Shown: piece by piece, positions 1-55,879 of the stretch
How the letters are laid out: each line of letters begins with the position of its first letter
Numbering within the stretch: position 1 is the first letter of the stretch
Source: Trichosphaerium sp. ATCC 40318
Lineage: Eukaryota > Protista > Tubulinea
Reading direction: 5' to 3'
Assembly (NCBI GenBank): GCA_038496445.1
Contig: JALMLS010000027.1
Coordinates: forward strand, 220,552-284,551
DNA length: 64,000 bases
Position numbers and translations under genes: made by a program
The notes under the pieces: model-generated
What the model was told of the DNA's origin: nothing
Database searches by the model: none
What the model saw: the letters and a program-made list of their open reading frames with translations, nothing else

Positions 1-1931
1 AGAATAACGTCGTAAGTTTGAAACAGATACATCGCCTCTATCACTGCGAAAAACTAATTGAAGAGAAGGACCTAAAGAAAAAAGACAACATGAGAAAAGC
101 GTTCGAACCAAAAAAAATTTGCGGAGATTTTCAATACGACAAATCACGTGACGAACAAAATAAATACGTACCCTTAATAAATGGGTTTCCTACTACATGC
201 ATTTTCTCTCCGCCTTGAAAAGAACCAAAATTACGACTCAAAACCTCAAGCTGAATATTCCCTAAAAAATCACAAAATTAGAAGGCGCTAGGTTCTATTT
301 TTAATGGATACGTACGCCGTCTGGTCAAAACTTTGCTATTTGAGTACGCATAAAAAGGGCTAGAGAGACACGTTACATGCTCTAATTTAGTTCCATTACC
401 CAACAATGTAAACCTAGACAAACAAAAAAGTCAGAAGATAAGAAAATCGAAAATGAAAGGTTTACCGAAGACAGAATTCGCGTTCGTTGTGTTTTGTCGA
501 AGCTTCGGACATTGATAAGTTTGTAAAGTCTACACGACCATCTGGTTTAATTTGTACTCTCTTACTTCCTGTGAGAATACCTTGACGTGGCTAAAAAGAG
601 CGAACATGAGCAATGGTTCAAAACAACTTTTTTGGAAACAAAAACTCGTAATGTCTCGTAACATACCTTGCTTGTATCACCAGGGGCTTGACTCTGTGGA
701 GAATATGCAAGCTCGGCAATCACTGATTTAGCACCAAGGCTCTTCCAAGGACCCAAAAGAGTTACTGAAGCGCTAAACGACCTAAATAATGAGAGTCAGT
801 TATAAAATTATAGGCACAATTGTATTGATTGAATGACGCTGTCACTGTGGTCACATGTTAATGAGACGTTGCGGAAAAAGATCTCTAGATTAAATTTTTT
901 GTACAAGGCTGTTAAGAAGCAGCAGCTATGTAAAAAAAAGCGCAAAAAGAGTTGTTCGTTGGTCGTAATAACGTTGCGAAAAAAAAAATTCTTTTGTTTA
1001 CCTTTTCTCGCTTGGTGTTCGTGTGCGAACTTCAACTGGTGGTTGTGTATGTACTACAATAACAACTTGCCCTGGAGCTAGAAAAAGAGAAAGGGAATAA
1101 GCAAAACAAAAAGCAATAACAAACAGCGAGGCAAAACTACCAAAAAGATCACGTGTAATCTCACTTTCCGACTTATTTCAGAAGGAAAACGAAAAAAAAA
1201 ATCCAAAACCTTGCGTAATCGATAAGTCGATTTCTTGCATACCTACTCTCCCTGTCATTGGTGCGTTTGCTAGCATATTATTACTGTTTACTAATGTCCT
1301 TGGAGGATGTGCAGTACGTGGTCTTGGTAGAGTAGCTGTTGGTTCTACTTTAATATCTCGTTTACCCTATGAAAGGTCCAAAGTTAGAAAAGTTCGCTTC
1401 ATCCTGTCAATCACTCAAGTGAAAATTTTTGTTGAAATGTTTTTTTTTTGGTTTCTTGAGAGCTTTATTAGGCTTCAATAAGTATTTACGCTATTTTATG
1501 CGATGTAGACTCTTCGGGTAATAGTTTGAGCGCAAATAGACAAAATAGTGTTTTGACAAATTAAAAAATCGTACCAAGGCCGTTAATTCTCTATTACTTG
1601 ATGGTTTTTGGTTGCCTCGTTGAACCACGAATGAAGGAAAGATTATTGGGGTATTTGAATCCATCATTGGCGAGTTTTGAGGCACCGCAAAGGACTGAGT
1701 GGGTGTTAAATAGGTGTCTTGACTTCTTCGACGTTCTCGCCCATTATAGCTGTAATCCATGTCCATTGACTCAAAATTCCCTCCAGAGTTGAAAGGAGAC
1801 TCGCTTGACTCCATAAACGCTGGTGGCGCAAATTCTGTTGAAGTTAGGTCGAACATCGTTCCATAACCCACAGATTGGCTGTTGTATGACGGTTCTTCCT
1901 TCCAGTCATCATCCCAACCATAGAATGCCAT
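1..1931 (-). CDS. Transcription factor with a Rel-homology/Velvet/CudA-like Ig-fold DNA-binding domain followed by an IPT/TIG domain (3' end runs off the window)
   Basis: Hand-spliced, frame-consistent GT-AG exons: 1931-~1575, ~1366-1242, 1077-1002, 781-667, 590-466, 413-316, 261-172, 71-1. Protein: acidic/low-complexity N-terminus, then VVIVVHTQPPVEVRTRTPSEKR...GRVDFTNLSMSEASTKHNEREFCLRFTLLGNGTKLEHVTCLSSPFYAYSNSKVLTRRRNIQLEVLSRNFGSFQGGEKMHVVGNPFIKGPSLQLVFR. Gene model is solid; family call is by motif recognition. Confidence 0.7.
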
Positions 1932-17150: not shown

Positions 17151-18825
17151 ATGGCAAGACAAGCTCCTTTAAAACCTTGGCAAACTGGTAGCGCTGATGG
17201 CCCTCCTACAGCTACTAGCGCGTTAGCTCTTCAGTCCCCGAGCGCTATGAGCGCTGCTGGAAGCACCAGTCCAGCAATTCCTGCTCGCGATGGTACAGGC
17301 GTCTCGCCTGGTTTTTCCACGTATGGTGGTAGCTACAATACAGCAGGCATGCTAACACGTTTGCCACATTTTGTTAATTATTCAGCAGGTGGATACGGAA
17401 GTAGTTACGGCAGTAGATATGGCAGTGGGTATGGTGGCTATGGCGGTGGTACGTAATATTACAATTCTTCCATTACATTGGGAAATACGAGTTTCCTTGT
17501 TTTTTTTTTTTGGTTTGGCGATTATTACTTTTTTTTGGCTTATTTCTTATTTCAAGGCCTCTCGAGCTATGGTGGCGGGTATAATCGATTTGGTAGTTCT
17601 TATGGAGGCTATGGCAGTAGCTATGGTAGCAGGTATGGCGGTGGTTACGGAAGTAGTTTTGGAAGCAGTTATGGCGGTGGTTATGGTGGTGGCTATGGAA
17701 GTAGTTATGGCGGTTACGGCGGTGGCTATGGTGGTTATGGCGGCGGAATGATGCAAAATGGACAAATGGGTCCTCAGGGTGGCATGATGCAAAACGGTGT
17801 ACGTAGTATTATATTAATCTAACAGTGCTTTTTCACATAAGAGCCTATTCAGTTTTTTTTTGTTAAAACCCTTCTACTCGTCAGCGTCTACGTGTCATTT
17901 ATTTATTTTTTTTTAATTTTATTCTAGATGGTACAACGCGGTATGGGATGGCTACAACAAATTGAATCTGTCACAACAAATGTTGGCCGATTTTCTTGGC
18001 TTTTGGACACAAACTTTCAAGCTGTTCATGGTTCCTTTACTTCTATTCTACAATTAATAGAAGGAGTCACAATACTCACTAGAGAGCTCGGTTGCACTTT
18101 CTCGAGCATTTTCATAATTAAACTATTCTACGCGGGTTTACGACGTATAATCAATATGGTAATGAAAGCAATGGGCGCTAAAGAGGAGTTTAACCTCAAA
18201 GCGTTCGAAAAATTTTCAGAAGAGTCAAATGTGGCTGCTTCAGCTGGTGGAAAGCCTAAACCAAAGAACAAAGCATACTGGGCTTCTATTTTCGTTACAA
18301 TTGGCGTTTTTTGTATTGGTGGACCTCTTTTGATTGGAATAATTGAAGGTATAATTAACCGCGTACGTGGTGGTAAAAAATCAGGTTCAATGGATAAAGC
18401 TTGGGGAAAAGGTGAAAGAATGAGGTACATAATACAAATACACGTGTAAAATTTTTTTATTTTTCCCAGCCGAAAAAGCACACTTGACTGATTTTTATTT
18501 CGAATTTTTCGACTTTTTGAATGAAATAAATGACTGGAAAAATTGTTAAAACTCTTTTGTAGAGCTCAACATGATTATCGTGCTCAGCGACGTGATGAGT
18601 TGGAATTTAGAGCAGGTGAAGTTATAGTGATAAAAGGTATGCAAAGCTTTTTTTTTTTTTTTTTTGGTGTTTTATTAATCTTCTTTGTTAGAAAAACCTT
18701 TTGATAAATGGTGGGTTGGTGAAATTGAAGGTGTCATGCCACCTCGGGTGGGACTTGTACCTTCGACTTTGTTGAGTCCAATTGTAGAAACTGTTAAAGT
18801 AGAACCTGTAGAGCCTGTAAAATAA
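17151..18825 (+). CDS. PEX13: Peroxisomal membrane docking protein Pex13
   Basis: N-terminal PLKPW, YG/YGG-repeat region, [28 protein letters not shown] segment ending GGPLL, C-terminal SH3 ([19 protein letters not shown]...WWVGE...GLVPS). Confidence 0.93.
17568..17746 (+). repeat. Coding low-complexity Tyr-Gly repeat of Pex13
   Basis: Repeated tatggtggc/tatggc units encoding YGG/YGSS. Confidence 0.85.
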
Positions 18826-19612: not shown

Positions 19613-22545
19613 ATGTCCAACCTGAGGGGAGGTCGCAAGAAAGCGTCAAATAAGCGCAAAGCTCCAAAAGCGCCACTATCCACCAGAAGGGCAGCAAAAA
19701 AGCAAAAGCACTTGACAGTGGCGTCAGTGATGACTAAATTTCCGCGAAGGGAGCTGCGCGCCATTTGTTCTGCTCTAAAGTTGAGTACAAAAGGCCGTAC
19801 CGCTCAACAATTAGTTGATACCATTGAACAGCATCCTAAAACACGTACGGTAGCCTTTTTTTAGTACTTTTTTTTTTTTTTTTGCGTTTAATGACACTTA
19901 TTGATCAATAACCGTTATTCTAGTCCAATTGAAGCGTTTGAAGGTGCCAGAATTAAAGGATCTATGTAGAAGCCTTGAAGTGCCAATTGGTAAAAAAGTA
20001 AAGGCGCAATTGGCCGTTAGTCTCCTAACAAAGTATAAACGTACGCTTTTTTTTTTACCGCGGATTTTTCAAACTGCCGCGTGTTTTTGAAAAACGGTTC
20101 AAAAAAATACCTGGAATTACTTGTTGTGTTGCCTTCTAATCAATGCTCTGTAGTACCCAAACCGGCCATTCGACCAAGAGTAACCAAGGGATCAACCCCA
20201 ACTTCCCAAGCTCTTGCCGGTAAAGTAAAAAAAAGGCGCAAATGTCGCCGAATCATCAAAATAAAACGAACTCGTAAGACTCCAGGCTCGTCTACACGTG
20301 CCACAAGCGAACAAAAAGCCTCGAGATCCACTGGTCCAATCGCACCCGCATCTCCACTGAACATATCTGTCAGTAGGCGGTCAAGTGGAAGCTCAACTGA
20401 TTCAATATCATACAACGCATCTGATTCTCCAGAAACTACCAAATCTAAGCGCCTTCGACAGGTGGTCATCACAAATGAGGGTTATGAACAAGAAAAGAGC
20501 GTGAATAATGCAATTCTTATGAGCGAGATTCGAAAATTGAAAGCGAAAGATGCTCAAAGAGACGCGAAAGATGCTGAAAGAGACGCGAAAGATGCTGAAC
20601 GAGATGCTGAAGTGCGTGCCACAAAGGCGCTGGCGAAATCAAATGAATATGCAATTGCATTGATAAAACTGCGAAAGGACCACCTCCATTCTCTCTCAAT
20701 ATTGAGTACGCTCAGTTTTTTGACCACTCTTTTTTTTGTGATAACACGTGTACTCAAATGACACTCACACTTAATTTTATTGTAGAGTACTCAGAACTGT
20801 ACAGTAAATTCGACAACCTTGGAGATATACTATTCAAGGAGAACTCATGGTTCGACGGTTCATGTTTGAAGTATTTTCGCGGACTGCCTAAAAACGTGTT
20901 CGCAAAGATGCTCAAGCAACAAACAGCCACAAAAACCACAGATAAACCAAAGAAAACCTGGCAACAAAAGGAAGACTACCTCACCGAGAAAACTGTTGAA
21001 CTGTTGAACAAGGGTAATACGTCTGATTACATGATGGCTTTTGACGCCAAAAGTAACCACACATTTCCAAAAACATCTACGCACGGTTTTGCCAAACCAG
21101 ACATTCTCCTGGCACCTAGAAACCTTGGTATTACGTTGCCAACATCGTATCAGATTATAGTACCATGGGAGGTGAAGTTGGTTGTGGGACAATCCAAAGG
21201 TTTTGAACCAGCAAAACTCGGACAAATAATGTACGGACTTCTTTTTTCTTCTCTTTTGTGTGCATTGTTGACCTAGTTCTAGGATGTATTGTATTCGTGT
21301 CATGTCTGCTCAGCCAACACGTACATCAGTGACAGCAGTTATTTCAAATGAAAAATACGTCCAGTTCTTGCGTATGGAGTGGGACGGCATAACTGCAAAA
21401 GGCGATAAATTCTATTTTACAGAAGTTTATGATTTTGTTGGTAAAGACTCTGAGGGTGCAAAGATGATCAACCAACTCATGGCATGCTCTCCTGAGCAAC
21501 TTGGATGGACCGTACCTCAGTTTAAAATCGGTGGGACTTACTATGCAGCAACGAATATTCTTGGTAAAGGTGCATCAGCATCTGTCTACCAGGTCCGAGC
21601 AGATGATAAGACTTATGCTGTAAAACATCTCCTTCCAAAGTACCTGCCAGAGGCGAAACATGAAGTGAAAATACTCAATAAGCTAAAGCCATGTGAGGAT
21701 GCTCATGTTCCAACAGTAGCACGTACCTCTTGGAAACCTGGAAGACAAGTACGTTTTGGTTTTTTATTCTTGATTGGAAAGTTTTGTGTTTTTTTTCCTT
21801 GTTTGTACTGACGTTGTTACCAGAACCCTAACAAGATATTTTTCGTATCTGAACCCGTGGGTCAAGTGCTGAGCGCAGATGAATTCTCTATTACAGGCCT
21901 CGTGTGCTCATTTTCATCTCTTGTTAAGACACTACAGGCTGCACACAATTTAGGATTTGTACACAGGTATGCTCATTCACGTGGGTTTTTCTTATCTTGA
22001 ACTTATTATGTCCTCTTAATTAACTCTTTTTCTCTTTCAGGGATATCTCACTTACAAACGTGATATGGTTTGAAAATGAGTTGTATATTATTGACTGGGC
22101 ATGTGCTGCTAAAAAAGGTGTGGAAGTTCTGTTCCAAGGCAACGTTCTGTTTGCACCTTCAAAATTGTGTCTGGAGTACAAACGTGATGTCAAATTTACT
22201 CCACGACCATGGCACGATCTCGTATCCCTTGTCAAGATGTATGCATACTTGACACTACCAAGGCAAGCTCGTATCGAGTGTTTTATTGAACCATTCGAAC
22301 AAATTGATTGGGTTACAGATCCACAACGTAGTTTTGCTGCCCAAAAGAAACTTAGTATGAATTGGGAAAATTTACTCCCTTATTTCAAAATACCTATGGC
22401 GTATGCACAAAAAACAGACTATGCCAAACTTGGAGCATGGTTTGATGAGAAGTTTATGTGGAGTAACCTTAAGACCGTCACTGATGAAGACGTGAATAAT
22501 GCCACATATGATGAAGGAAAACCAATTGGTCAGCGATTTTCCTAG
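19613..22545 (+). CDS. Crinkler/CR-type effector-like protein, copy A: basic NLS + 2x SAP/HeH + coiled-coil repeat + PD-(D/E)xK nuclease + protein kinase
   Basis: Exons 19613-19844, 19924-20040, 20154-20705, 20786-21230, 21283-21748, 21824-21966, 22041-22545, all in frame. SAP-like RRELRAICSALKLSTKG...QQLVDTI and LKRLKVPELKDLCRSLEVPIG..KAQL. REase AKPDILL...WEVK...LGQ. Kinase LGKGASASVY, YAVK, HEV, VHRDISLTNV, IIDWA, HDLVSLV. Confidence 0.85.
20543..20605 (+). repeat. 21-bp coding tandem repeat (AKDA[Q/E]RD x3)
   Basis: gcgaaagatgct(c/g)aa(a/c)gaga(c/t) three times; an expanded/rearranged version occurs in copy B at ~24935-25110. Confidence 0.9.
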
Positions 22546-23006
22546 CTTGTAAAATAGATTGATAGATTTTGGATTGATAATAACACACATTGTAAATATT
22601 GTTTTCTTCACCCTATTAAATAAACTTATCACCCAAAGTATCTTGAAATGACTAGTGGTTTGTTGTATTCTGGTAACCGTGTACGAGATTTTTAACAGGA
22701 AATACTAACTACAATAGGGTGGCGTGGGAAAGTACGTGTATGGAACAAGCTAGGTACATTTCTTCCATCTTACATAAAATAAAAATGCTGGTTGGATTCT
22801 ATTTGGTTTTTATTCCACGATAACCGAGTCTGTTTTTATTTTTTATAACCTACATGATTTTTTTGAATCTTCACACTGAAAATAAACGCATAGTTTGAAT
22901 CCCATCACCGAAAATAAATACACAGTTTATTCGATAAGGTGAAAAAACCCCAATATTTACAATGTGTGTTATTATCAATCCAAAATCCATCAATCTATTT
23001 TACAAG

Positions 23007-25434
23007 CTAGGAAAATCGCTGACCAATTGGTTTTCCTTCATCATATGTGGTATTATTCACGTCTTCAGCAGTAACAGCCTTAATATTACTCCACATAAAC
23101 TTCTCATCAAACCATGCTCCAAGTTTGGCATAGTCTGTTTTTTGTGCATACGCCATAGGTACTTTGAAATAAGGGAGTAAATTTTCCCAATTCATACTTA
23201 TCATCTTTTGGGCAGTAGAACTACGTTGTGGATCTGTATTCCAATCAATTTGTTCGAATGGTTCAATAAAACACTCAATACGAGCTTGCCTTGGTAGTGT
23301 CAAGTATGCATACATCTTGACAAGGGATACAAGATCGTGCCATGGTCGTGGAGTAAATTTGACATTGCGTCTGTACTCGATACACAATTTTGAAGGTGCA
23401 AATAGAACGTTGCCTTGGAACAGAACTTCCACACCTTTTTTGGTAGCACACGCCCAGTCAATAATATACAACTCATTTTCAAACCATATCACGTTTGTAA
23501 GTGAGATATCCCTGAAAGAAAAAAAGAGTTAATTAAGAGCATAATAAGTTCAAGATAAGAAAAACCCACGTGAATGAGCATACCTGTGTACAAATCCTAA
23601 ATTGTGTGCAGCCTGTAGTGTCTTAACAAGAGATGAAAATGAGCACACGAGGCCTGTAATAGAGAATTCATCTGCGCTCAGCACTTGACCCACTGGTTCA
23701 GATACGAAAAATATCTTGTTAGGGTTCTGGTAACAATGTCAGTACAAACAAGAAAGAAGGAAAAGAAAGAAAAAAACCAAACGTACTTGTCTTCCAGGTT
23801 TCCATGATGTACATGCTACTGTTGGAACATGAGCATTCTCATACGGCTTTAACTTATTGAGTATGTCCACTTCATGTTTCGCCTCCTCCAGGAATTGTGG
23901 AAAGAGATGTTTCACAGCATAAGTCTTATCATCTGCTCGGACCTGGTAGACAGATGCTGATGCACCTTTACCAAGAATATTCGTTGCTGCATAGTAAGTC
24001 CCACCGATTTTAAACTGAGGTACGGTCCATCCAAGTTCCTCAGGAGAGCATGCCATGAGGTGGTTGATCATCTTTGCACCCTCAGAGTCTTTACCAACAA
24101 AATCATAAACTTCTGTAAAATAGAATTTATCGCCTTTTGCAGTTATGCCGTCCCACTCCATACGCAAGAACTGGACGTATTTCTCATTTGAAATAACTGC
24201 TGTCACTGATGTACGTGTTGGCTGAGCAGACATGACACGAATACAATACATCCTAGAAACTATGTTAGCAACACACAAAAGAAAAAGCAAAAAAGTGACA
24301 TTCAGGAGGTCATACATTATTTGTCCAAGTTTTGCTGGTTCGAATGTTTTGGATTGTCCCACAACCAACTTCACCTCCCATGGTACTATAATCTGATACG
24401 ATGTTGGAAACGTAATACCAAGGTTTCTAGGTGCCAGAAGAATGTCTGGTTTAGCAAAACCGTGCGTAGATGTTTTTGGAAATGTGTGGTTACTTTTGGC
24501 ATCAAAAGCCATCATGTAATCAGACGTATTACCCTTGTTCAACAGTTCAACAGTTTTCTCGGTGAGGTAGTCTTCCTTTTGTTGCCAGGTTTTCTTTGGT
24601 TTATCTGTGGTTTTTGTGGCTGTTTGTTGCTTGAGCATCTTTGCGAACACGTTTTTAGGCAGTCCGCGAAAATACTTCAAACATGAACCGTCGAACCATG
24701 AGTTCTCCTTGAATAGTATATCTCCAAGGTCGTCGAATTTACTGTACAGTTCTGAGTACTCTACAATAAAATTAAGTGTGAGTGTCATTTGAGTACACGT
24801 GGTACAAAAAAAAGAGTGGGGTCAAAAAACTGAGCGTACTCATTATTGAGAGAGAATGGAGGTGGTTCTTTCGCAGTCTTATCAATGCAACTGCAGCGTC
24901 AAGTCCGTTTAATCGTGCCTCTGTGATCTTCTCTCTCGCGTCCCTTTCAGCATCTTTCGCGTCTCTTTCAGCATCTCTTGCATCTCTTTCAGCATCTCTT
25001 TGAGCATCTTTCGCTTTCAATTTTCGAATCTCGCTCGTAATAATTTCACGTTGTGCATCTTTTGCATCTCTTGCTACATCTTTCGCTTTCAATTTTCGAA
25101 TCTCGCTCATAATAATTTCATCCATACTCCTTTCTTGTTCACAACCCTCATCATATGGTATTGAACCAGTTGAGCTTCCACTATATTTATTTGACAGACC
25201 TACGCGTGTGGTAGGACTAGTTGGCCTCAAGGTCTTTGGTGTGTGCGTAATACGGCGTTTAGTTGGACAAGTTCGTTTTATTTTGATGATTCGGCGGCCT
25301 TTGTTTGCCAAATGTAGGGCAGGTGTTTTGGTTGCCTTTTTTTGCTTTTTGGCGAGCCTGTCGGTGTTTAGTGGCGCTTTTGGGGCTTTGCGCTTATTTA
25401 ACGCTTTCTTGCGAGTTTCTCTGAGTTTGGACAT
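23007..25434 (-). CDS. Crinkler/CR-type REase + kinase protein, copy B (lacks the SAP/HeH exons)
   Basis: Inverted paralogue of copy A with the same intron positions in the REase/kinase part and intact PD..EVK..Q and HRDISLTN/DWA motifs; shorter, divergent N-terminus. Confidence 0.85.
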
Positions 25435-49230: not shown

Positions 49231-50289
49231 ATGACAACACCAAAGAAGCACCTCACGTCCATTGAGGGCGACGAAATACAGCTCACTGATGATGCCGTGC
49301 TTGTTATAGCAGAATGGTTGCCTTTCAAGACATTAAACAGTGTCATGCTAATTTCGAAGCGATTCATGTCTCTTTTGGCCGATAACCTTACGTGGAAGCG
49401 TGCATACATAAGAAAATACAAATGTACATCGCCAATACCGGATGATAAAGAGATTACGATAGATTGGCGTGTATTGGCTATGGGTCGCTCCTCTATGTTC
49501 TTTCCAAGTACAACCAACATTTCTGAGCGGGTCTTGGCACTTGACAGCTCACAGAACATGAAAAGCGACATAGCGGCCATACAAAGGTTATTGGGAAGGT
49601 TACAAGCGTCATCCGTGTTCAAAAAGACTGTTGAAGAACTTGAAGGCACAGTAGAACAACTCTTTTCTGCTACTGTATTTACCGCTGTTACATACGAGAC
49701 AACGCTTGCAGATTACTTTGTAAGCGATTCGCGATCTATAAAGGTACCAAGCAACTTCAAAACTTACAGTTTTTGCTCAAAAGTGTTTCGGCTTTTTTTC
49801 TTGTCGTTTTGAACAAAACCTCTTATTATGTTGTAGTGGACTCTTTACTCTCTTGCTACTGGTCTTCCTGTAAAGTTTGCATACTCCCATTACAAGAGTG
49901 GTGATAAAGAAAAAGCAGAAGGAGAACATGAGATACAATACGAAATCCATGGAGAAAAAATGAAGTCGTTGTTTCCTCAAATTCCTCGCCAAACTCCATC
50001 TTTCAGGTTCCGTAAAAATACAGATGACAGTCAAGCGGAAAAGGATAAACAAAAAAAAATAAAGGACAACCTTGAGAATACAGTAATACCACTGGTTTCT
50101 TTTATTTTTGGTGGCGATGGAAAGGATGAAGATCAAAGATCTGATTTGGCTAGTTATATTTATTCATGTTGTTTTGCTCACTATCCAAAATCAAGATATT
50201 TTAGAGGAGCTTCTCCTCCTTCTGATTGGAACGGGTTATATGAAGCTATAGATGAGGCTTCTATGTATTGGTCTATATGCTCTATGTAG
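49231..50289 (+). CDS. F-box protein
   Basis: LTDDAVLVIAEWLPFKTLNSVMLISKRFMSLLADNLTWKRAY is F-box-like; one intron ~49744-49836 joins the two ORFs in frame. Confidence 0.75.

Positions 50290-50837: not shown

Positions 50838-55879
<5,042 letters not shown>

Follow-up and report, generated by a model that had tools for sequence, protein, structure and literature searches.

A minus-strand gene of Trichosphaerium sp. ATCC 40318 and its protist protein family, with a predicted fold resembling the Rel homology region

At one end of a 64,000-nucleotide stretch of DNA from Trichosphaerium sp. ATCC 40318 (contig JALMLS010000027.1; the whole stretch is referred to here as the window), a series of short minus-strand exons raises the question of whether the two-domain architecture of NF-kB/Rel/NFAT transcription factors, an immunoglobulin (Ig)-fold DNA-binding domain followed by an IPT domain, also occurs in a protist. 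To our knowledge, factors of the Rel/NF-kB/NFAT type are regarded as an innovation of Holozoa, and the transcription factor repertoires of amoebae are considered sparse. In a survey of dictyostelid transcription factors, the Rel homology region and its RHD were listed as absent from Dictyostelia (PMC6873476). The original prediction, made from the letters of this locus, had assigned to positions 1-1077 six short exons that together encode an RHD plus IPT protein in a probably non-opisthokont host. Here, the predicted product of the locus is assigned to a conserved, unnamed and undescribed protist family, and the fold predicted for its closest homologue is a pair of Ig domains resembling a Rel homology region. 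The architecture thus appears Rel-like, judging from this model; homology to Rel and DNA binding are at most putative.

When eight exons with GT-AG boundaries in 1-1931 (-) were joined by script, they gave an open frame of 352 codons with 0 stops. The region 1-1077 contains six of the eight (exons 3 to 8), which lie on the minus strand at 1077-1002, 781-667, 590-466, 413-316, 261-172 and 71-1, and two more are located upstream. The predicted gene runs off the window at base 1, with its C-terminus beyond the window start. All seven introns (208, 165, 220, 76, 52, 54, and 100 nt) have GT...TAG boundaries and pyrimidine tracts, and the window is eukaryotic DNA of ~38% G+C. The exons are given below, with positions and E-values from a hidden Markov model (HMM) built from 19 homologues; the N-terminal and C-terminal domains of the family are called N-domain and C-domain (the IPT-type domain).

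Exon 1: 1575..1931, minus strand; ATG at 1931, 119 codons, GT donor at 1574
Exon 2: 1243..1366, minus strand; 124 nt, basic, proline-rich spacer; AG acceptor 1368-1367, GT donor 1242-1241
Exon 3: 1002..1077, minus strand; first N-domain strand and loop QPPVEVRTRTPSEK(R); HMM positions 12-35, E 1.4e-7
Exon 4: 667..781, minus strand; N-domain strands B and C (SFSASVTLLGPWK...AELAYSP...); HMM positions 35-79, E 2.7e-3
Exon 5: 466..590, minus strand; ILTGSK...VDFTNLSMSEASTKHNEREFCL, hairpin and loop with the highest conservation in the N-domain; HMM positions 70-111, E 3.9e-17
Exon 6: 316..413, minus strand; last N-domain strands and basic linker (PFYAYSNSKVLTRR-R); HMM positions 108-149, E 4.5e-10
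Exon 7: 172..261, minus strand; start of the IPT domain (NIQLEVLSRNFGSFQGGEKMHVVGNPFIK); HMM positions 146-180, E 8.1e-11
Exon 8: 1..71, minus strand, cut by the window edge; continuation of the IPT domain (PSLQLVFRSDRGDVSVSNLRRYS...); HMM positions 172-198, E 2.3e-3

A six-frame scan of all 2737 stop-free stretches of the window with the family HMM gave matches to exons 3 to 8 only, in order and covering positions 12-198, with every other stretch at E>0.7. Likewise, tblastn of relatives against the window produced collinear matches on exon 3, exon 4, exon 5, exons 6 and 7 together, and exon 8, and nowhere else; for exon 4, the queries P0033 and P0009 covered 783-694. Neither search found a paralogue of the gene elsewhere in the 64,000-nt window. 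The alignment of exon 8 to the family ends at the YSE motif, leaving HMM positions 199-256 (~58) and the C-terminal tail beyond base 1. Of the 39 invariant columns of the family that can be tested in the window, 36 are kept in an exon-by-exon alignment, including P22, R27, T28, R29, T30, and P31 in exon 3, F133, Y134, S137, K140, V141, L142, R144, and R145 in exon 6, and G162, H167, G170, P172, and F173 in exon 7. The codons split by introns 3, 5, 6, and 7 restore the invariant R35 (through AG|G), followed by R, R, and G as in the closest homologue, P0033. The peptides on which the original prediction relied were recovered at their implied places, namely QPPVEVRTRTPSEKR (1045-1001), VDFTNLSM (533-510), SEASTKHNEREFCL (509-468), LSSPFY (367-350), and NIQLEVLSR...GNPF (259-179), while FCL-R-FT is formed only via the splice 466|413. 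The exon arrangement and the pattern of matches are far beyond chance, and 1-1931 (-) is, as read from these alignments, a real, intron-rich gene of which the N-terminal 352 residues are encoded here.

The acceptor of exon 4 was placed at 781, and not at the in-frame position 772, because this choice keeps the invariant F37 and the spacing of the family. The donor of exon 2 (1242-1241) was chosen because it is the sole donor that keeps the frame into exon 3; no homology support was found for exon 2, which is the least certain of the eight. Exon 1 encodes an acidic and aromatic N-terminus (MAFYGWDDDWKEE...) followed by a sequence rich in S, P, T, and N, which is probably disordered, and its product is a putative activation region. 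Exon 1 had no significant match to homologues and no Pfam match; its start resembles the acidic-aromatic N-termini that are found across the family, for example AFYAWDGDMD in P0081. As a separate observation, the hexamer CACGTG was seen 50 times in 1-64000, compared with 9.6 expected by shuffling (maximum of 20 in 100 shuffles), and the copies at 145-150 and 1150-1155 sit in introns 7 and 2 of the predicted gene.

The protein family was delineated by searching exon 5 alone (41 residues) against 1.84 billion protein representatives, which returned 23 single-stretch relatives with 51-70% identity. Two profile searches then retrieved 80-87 clusters at E 1e-60 to 1e-140; the family, a tight one, comprises about 95 clusters in total, every one of them annotated as "hypothetical". 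Dictyostelid members derive from Polysphondylium violaceum, Acytostelium, Tieghemostelium, Dictyostelium purpureum, Heterostelium, and Synstelium, and other amoebozoan members from Ceratiomyxa, Cavostelium, Protostelium, Soliformovum, Phalansterium, Cochliopodium, Planoprotostelium, Filamoeba, Stereomyxa, Stenamoeba, Pellita, and Vannella. Outside Amoebozoa, the family includes four isoforms from one Trinity locus of the CRuMs species Diphylleia rotans (P0015, P0027-P0029) and one transcriptome protein of Colponema vietnamica (P0097), which could be real or could derive from prey or a contaminant. No opisthokonts were found among the named members, and no proteins of D. discoideum, Entamoeba, or Acanthamoeba turned up in the family searches; the searched collection yielded no entry for the protein of the window itself. 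This range, almost wholly amoebozoan among named members, fits a host in Amoebozoa (Trichosphaerium) and agrees with the earlier suggestion of a non-opisthokont host. The product is placed, by alignment, in a conserved protist family that is unnamed and undescribed; part of the domain is already represented in Pfam as DG1062_N. Four candidates from the searches were rejected. The three best E-values obtained with exon 5 (P0001-P0003) belong to unrelated long proteins built of repeats, an fn3 array in one case, and were set aside because 5-7 copies of a generic repeated hairpin (LTG..V.I....F.NL..EA.T) add up in their scores; P0024, an unrelated sulfotransferase, has low-complexity matches.

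Family alignments reveal a constant order of parts. A variable N-terminus of 50-450 residues, acidic and probably disordered, precedes a domain of ~125 residues with the invariant motifs QPPxEVRTRTPxExR, ILGG, FxxLxxxE(A/S)STKHxExEF, and PFYAYSxxKVLxRR. It is followed by a domain of ~100 residues (GGxxxHxxGxPF ... YSExVxFFxxPxYP ... TNDGR) and, in many members, by a short basic tail after the IPT domain, often KRLRSRF. The closest homologue, P0033, is ~55% identical to the window protein over the aligned exon stretches and has both domains in one uninterrupted open reading frame on a genomic contig that bears other genes; as a natural counterpart without introns, it shows the part order of the window gene. 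P0033 was located on compact genomic contigs, L004 (1791-3041; Logan SRR22746112) and L005 (SRR10663366), where it has a CCD97-like gene as its neighbour on L004 and a RasGEF gene on L005. In another member, P0032 (Heterostelium album PPL_05494, 766 aa), the N-domain motifs at ~221-340 are joined to a complete alpha-galactosidase (Melibiase_2, 412-674). This public gene model is probably a merger of two neighbouring genes, which may explain why the family was missed in surveys of dictyostelid transcription factors.

To examine the fold, the natural homologue segment P0033:160-416 was used in place of the joined window protein. Its AlphaFold2 model, based on a 19-row alignment (predicted local distance difference test [pLDDT] 87.8; predicted template modelling score [pTM] 0.76), consists of two beta-sandwich (Ig-like) domains with a short helix between them that bears KVLxRRR. 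In a Foldseek search against the PDB, ranks 1-43 were all Rel homology regions (p52/RelB, NFAT1, p65, p50, c-Rel, and NFAT5) or EBF1; the alignments spanned both domains, and 3do7 matched best (8e-12). A VIA-align search of the same model against 48,161 chains gave the following matches and values.

RelA/c-Rel, both domains: 13.9; 214; 7.1
p52, both domains: 13.4; 216; 7.7
NFAT5, both domains: 12.9; 211; 9.3
p65 dimerisation domain, C-domain only: 13.7; 97; 1.8
NFAT1 C-domain, C-domain only: 12.8; 93; 1.7
EBF, CAMTA, and plexin IPT domains: about 11

By shape, the top match in the ESM Atlas was an arthropod RHD cluster (template modelling [TM] score 0.62; 229 of 257 residues aligned), with NFAT, RelB, and p105 next. 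For P0021, the first match by Atlas features was likewise an RHD cluster (0.88, 177 shared features), and its own Atlas model matches an RHD cluster at TM 0.57. The fold predicted for the homologue is therefore a Rel-homology-region-like pair of Ig domains, and the proposed two-domain RHD plus IPT layout was seen in the model of the nearest homologue, P0033, where the two-Ig arrangement is present and whole Rel homology regions match best.

The N-domain taken alone presents a different picture. In a separate model (pLDDT 82.3), VIA-align scores were a near tie among p52 (10.3), VosA velvet (10.1), VeA (9.2), p65 (9.2), Dictyostelium STAT (9.0), NFAT5 (8.5), and Runx1 (8.2), with unrelated Ig-like domains at 7-9. 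With Foldseek, the first 16 matches were STAT6, 1, 3, 2, and 5 (E 1e-4 to 1e-3; TM by query 0.51-0.64; 17-22% identity). By ESM features, DG1062_N clusters were nearest, then LAG1, RHD, Runt, and COE, with the RHD cluster only seventh. In these models, Rel, velvet, STAT, and Runt fit the isolated N-domain to a similar degree, and because of this near tie the likeness to Rel rests on the C-domain and on the two-domain arrangement. The N-domain belongs to the broad p53-like class of Ig-fold DNA-binding domains, with DG1062_N, and not RHD_DNA_bind, as its nearest catalogued relative. The likeness of the N-domain to velvet and STAT folds as well is in keeping with the notion of a family linking velvet and CudA to Rel, but the N-domain by itself exhibits no preference for Rel. 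A weak Pfam match to Calmodulin_bind, the N-terminal domain of plant CBP60, was also noted at residues 72-122 of P0033:160-416 (E 0.085; 2 of 19 members), covering the ILGG...STKH hairpin of the N-domain; it may hint at a distant relationship to the DNA-binding domain of plant CBP60/SARD1.

Several results weigh against a Rel-like assignment of the window protein. The model belongs to a homologue, P0033, that is ~55% identical over the aligned exons, and not to the window protein itself. The Pfam RHD_DNA_bind profile (PF00554) matched 0/10 full-length homologues at E<=0.1 and 0/19 homologue domains at E<=1, Pfam Velvet and STAT_bind had no match in any of the 19 members or in the window exons, and an N-domain profile found no match among PDB sequences at E<=10. 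In the family loop, an invariant R-T-R-T-P-x-(E/D)-x-R after QP-x4, threonine would stand where Rel RxRYxxE has its DNA-contacting tyrosine, a replacement that had been noted for the window sequence. The putative equivalence of this loop to the Rel recognition loop (RxRYxCEG, with DNA-contacting Arg, Tyr, and Glu) is based on matching start positions in the structural alignments and on Rel sequences; the motif parallels to p50, p65, and NFAT drawn in the original prediction are likewise putative. Finally, three invariant residues are changed in the window (G78T, R151E, and E196R), so that this copy may be a divergent paralogue. A further null, the lack of any Pfam match at E<=10 for the window exons taken singly, RHD_DNA_bind included, carries no evidential weight because the pieces are too short (23-41 residues).

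Some sequence signal does exist for the C-domain. RHD_dimer (PF16179) reached at best 23.6 bits (E 5e-5) against a gathering score of 28.3, and is thus below threshold; at E<=1 it matched 5 of the 19 members, with 3.4e-5 as the best value. TIG (PF01833) matched 7 of 19, likewise below threshold. The family profile, when compared to PDB sequences, reached the IPT domain only, with NFAT5 first (E 0.016), then p65, NFAT2, NFAT4, and RBPJ. The RHD_dimer and NFAT5 matches are suggestive with respect to the C-domain. Overall, however, with RHD_DNA_bind unmatched, RHD_dimer below threshold, and the N-domain profile finding no PDB sequence, the proposed membership in the Rel family fails at the level of the profiles compared.

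These data bear directly on the possibility that the family is a true, deep member of Rel/NFAT, descended from the same ancestral RHD plus IPT gene, which would make the Rel homology region older than the opisthokonts. Such a descent is suggested by the two domains together, which match Rel homology regions best in three structure libraries, by the leaning of the C-domain sequence towards RHD_dimer, and by the QP-x4-R-x-R-x3-E spacing, which is readable in the sequence and conserved in the family. Against it weigh the failure of RHD_DNA_bind across all 19 members, the sub-threshold RHD_dimer scores, and an N-domain whose resemblance to Rel does not exceed that to velvet, STAT, or Runt and which ESM features place beside DG1062_N clusters. 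Moreover, CSL and COE, both of which are among the matches, likewise combine an Ig-fold DNA-binding domain and an IPT domain. A deep Rel/NFAT ancestry is accordingly considered unlikely.

The explanation that is preferred, with some reservation, is that the family comprises dimeric, sequence-specific transcription factors predicted to work like Rel and NFAT, whatever their ancestry. Invariant polar and basic residues fall in four segments of the P0033 model: RTRTP...R; ILGG, in the stretch before the short strand 82-84; STKH; and KVLxRRR, in the interdomain helix. By the strand order of the model, the RTRTP, ILGG, and STKH segments share one end of the sandwich, next to the linker, and it is at this end of the Rel sandwich that the DNA-contacting loops L1, L2, and L3 are located. 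In the proposed mechanism, DNA would be contacted at one end of the N-domain by the loops RTRTP (after the first strand) and STKH (between strands 90-98 and 110-118), together with the RRR of the basic interdomain linker. The IPT domain would dimerise the protein, allowing a two-part site to be read, and the acidic N-terminus would activate transcription.

Ig-fold and IPT domains could instead serve protein-protein or other binding, as they do in many Ig/IPT proteins, in which case the family would not bind DNA at all and its likeness to transcription factors would be superficial. This is held to be improbable: transcription factors (Rel, NFAT, EBF, velvet, STAT, Runx, and p53) account for the best matches throughout, the invariant Arg, Lys, and Thr residues lie in loops and the linker and not at core positions, the N-termini are acidic, and a basic tail ends many members. 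An artefact of the gene model or a decaying pseudogene copy, to which the three changed invariant residues and the lack of significant homology support for exons 1 and 2 might point, is scarcely credible for 352 codons that cross seven introns without a stop or frameshift, with every splice site canonical, 36/39 testable invariant residues kept, and split codons that give the residues of the homologues.

Beyond the preferred reading of a dimeric transcription factor, a more sweeping and doubtful proposal is that the family, together with wider DG1062_N-type proteins, represents a surviving non-opisthokont lineage of the ancestral factor, an Ig-fold DNA-binding domain joined to IPT, that lies behind Rel/NFAT. 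The Rel homology architecture would then be at least as old as the common ancestor of Amorphea and CRuMs, and velvet and CudA-like proteins would be derivatives in which the IPT domain was lost or replaced.

Elsewhere in the window, Pfam matches were obtained for three pieces of open reading frames that look like ordinary eukaryotic genes, and one region contains long open reading frames with weak matches.

17928-18449, plus strand: Peroxin-13 N-terminal region (1e-18)
53533-54048, minus strand: PI3K C2 (6e-15)
49231-49812, plus strand: F-box, a weak match under the gathering score (E 4e-4)
20081-25434, both strands: long open reading frames with weak protein-kinase N-lobe matches (E ~3e-3 to 7e-3)

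If the family binds DNA, it would add an unrecognised class of transcription factors to amoebae and would provide a testable outgroup for the relations among the DNA-binding folds of Rel, velvet, STAT, and CudA. Genetic study would then be possible through the members in P. violaceum (CYY_000595), Acytostelium, and Tieghemostelium, and gene knock-outs in P. violaceum have been published (PMC8808424). The value of the finding is limited because the case rests on a predicted fold and because part of the domain is already in Pfam as DG1062_N.

Among known systems, fungal velvet proteins (VosA, VelB, and VeA) differ from the family in that no Pfam Velvet match was found in it, and since velvet matches are restricted to the N-domain, no part of velvet lines up with the IPT domain. 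STAT proteins, in which the DNA-binding domain sits between a coiled-coil domain and a linker plus SH2, resemble the N-domain in fold only, with no STAT or SH2 Pfam match in full-length homologues. This STAT-like signal fits a link between CudA and STAT that Yamada et al. reportedly proposed in 2008.

DG1062_N (PF28397; Pfam 38.1), named after Dictyostelium DG1062, has a precomputed match on nine family clusters. The match is marked as weak in the one cluster whose strength is shown, most family members lack it, and the Pfam copy used here gave no DG1062_N match to the family. By ESM features, the DG1062_N clusters nearest the N-domain (0.85-0.86; 176-188 shared features) are from haptophytes and oomycetes. 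Nothing was found in the literature on the function of DG1062_N.

CudA-like (Cud) factors (PMC5923282, PMC6873476, PMC8808424) share with the family an amoebozoan distribution and a beta-rich core of ~120 residues. The Cud family, with five ortholog groups, has been found only in Amoebozoa (PMC8808424), and has been described as Amoebozoa-specific with distant plant relatives (PMC3188802). When the published alignment was compared by eye, ...VLTSQHEDMFFRV... was seen to parallel the family's ...LSMSEASTKHxExEFCL..., and ...PIKVISKPEQLKKK to parallel ...SxxKVLxRRR. In canonical CudA-like proteins, the core is followed by a helical-looking stretch rich in Q and E, whereas the core of the family is followed by IPT. 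PPL_05494 (P0032) is missing from the six Cud genes listed for P. pallidum, which include PPL_05090, 08828, 04431, 00580, and 01091, and proteins named CudA or DG1062 were absent from the word-index matches, which consisted of "hypothetical" family members only. The likeness to CudA suggested in the original prediction is therefore retained at the level of motifs, as aligned by eye, and the family itself is absent from published lists of Cud genes.

COE/EBF, CSL, and SPT23/MGA2 proteins follow the same logic of an Ig-fold DNA-binding domain combined with IPT; EBF1 is among the two-domain matches, and by ESM features the neighbours of P0021 include clusters of CSL, COE, and SPT23/MGA2. Their matches are weaker than those of Rel, and no Pfam match to COE1_DBD, LAG1-DNAbind, BTD, or SPT23_MGA2_DBD was found in the homologues, with SPT23_MGA2_DBD possibly outside the copy used.

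The Rel homology region of NF-kB/Rel/NFAT proteins differs from the family in taxonomic range, as the named family members belong to Amoebozoa and CRuMs and not to Holozoa, and in context, as the family has neither ankyrin repeats nor an IkB-type partner in view; the loop that follows the first strand in the family also looks shorter than the Rel recognition loop. The two have much in common: a short basic linker connects an Ig-fold N-domain to an IPT-type C-domain, a conserved Arg-rich loop with QP-x4-R-x-R-x3-E spacing comes after the first strand, and, in many homologues of the family, a basic tail is placed right after the IPT domain.

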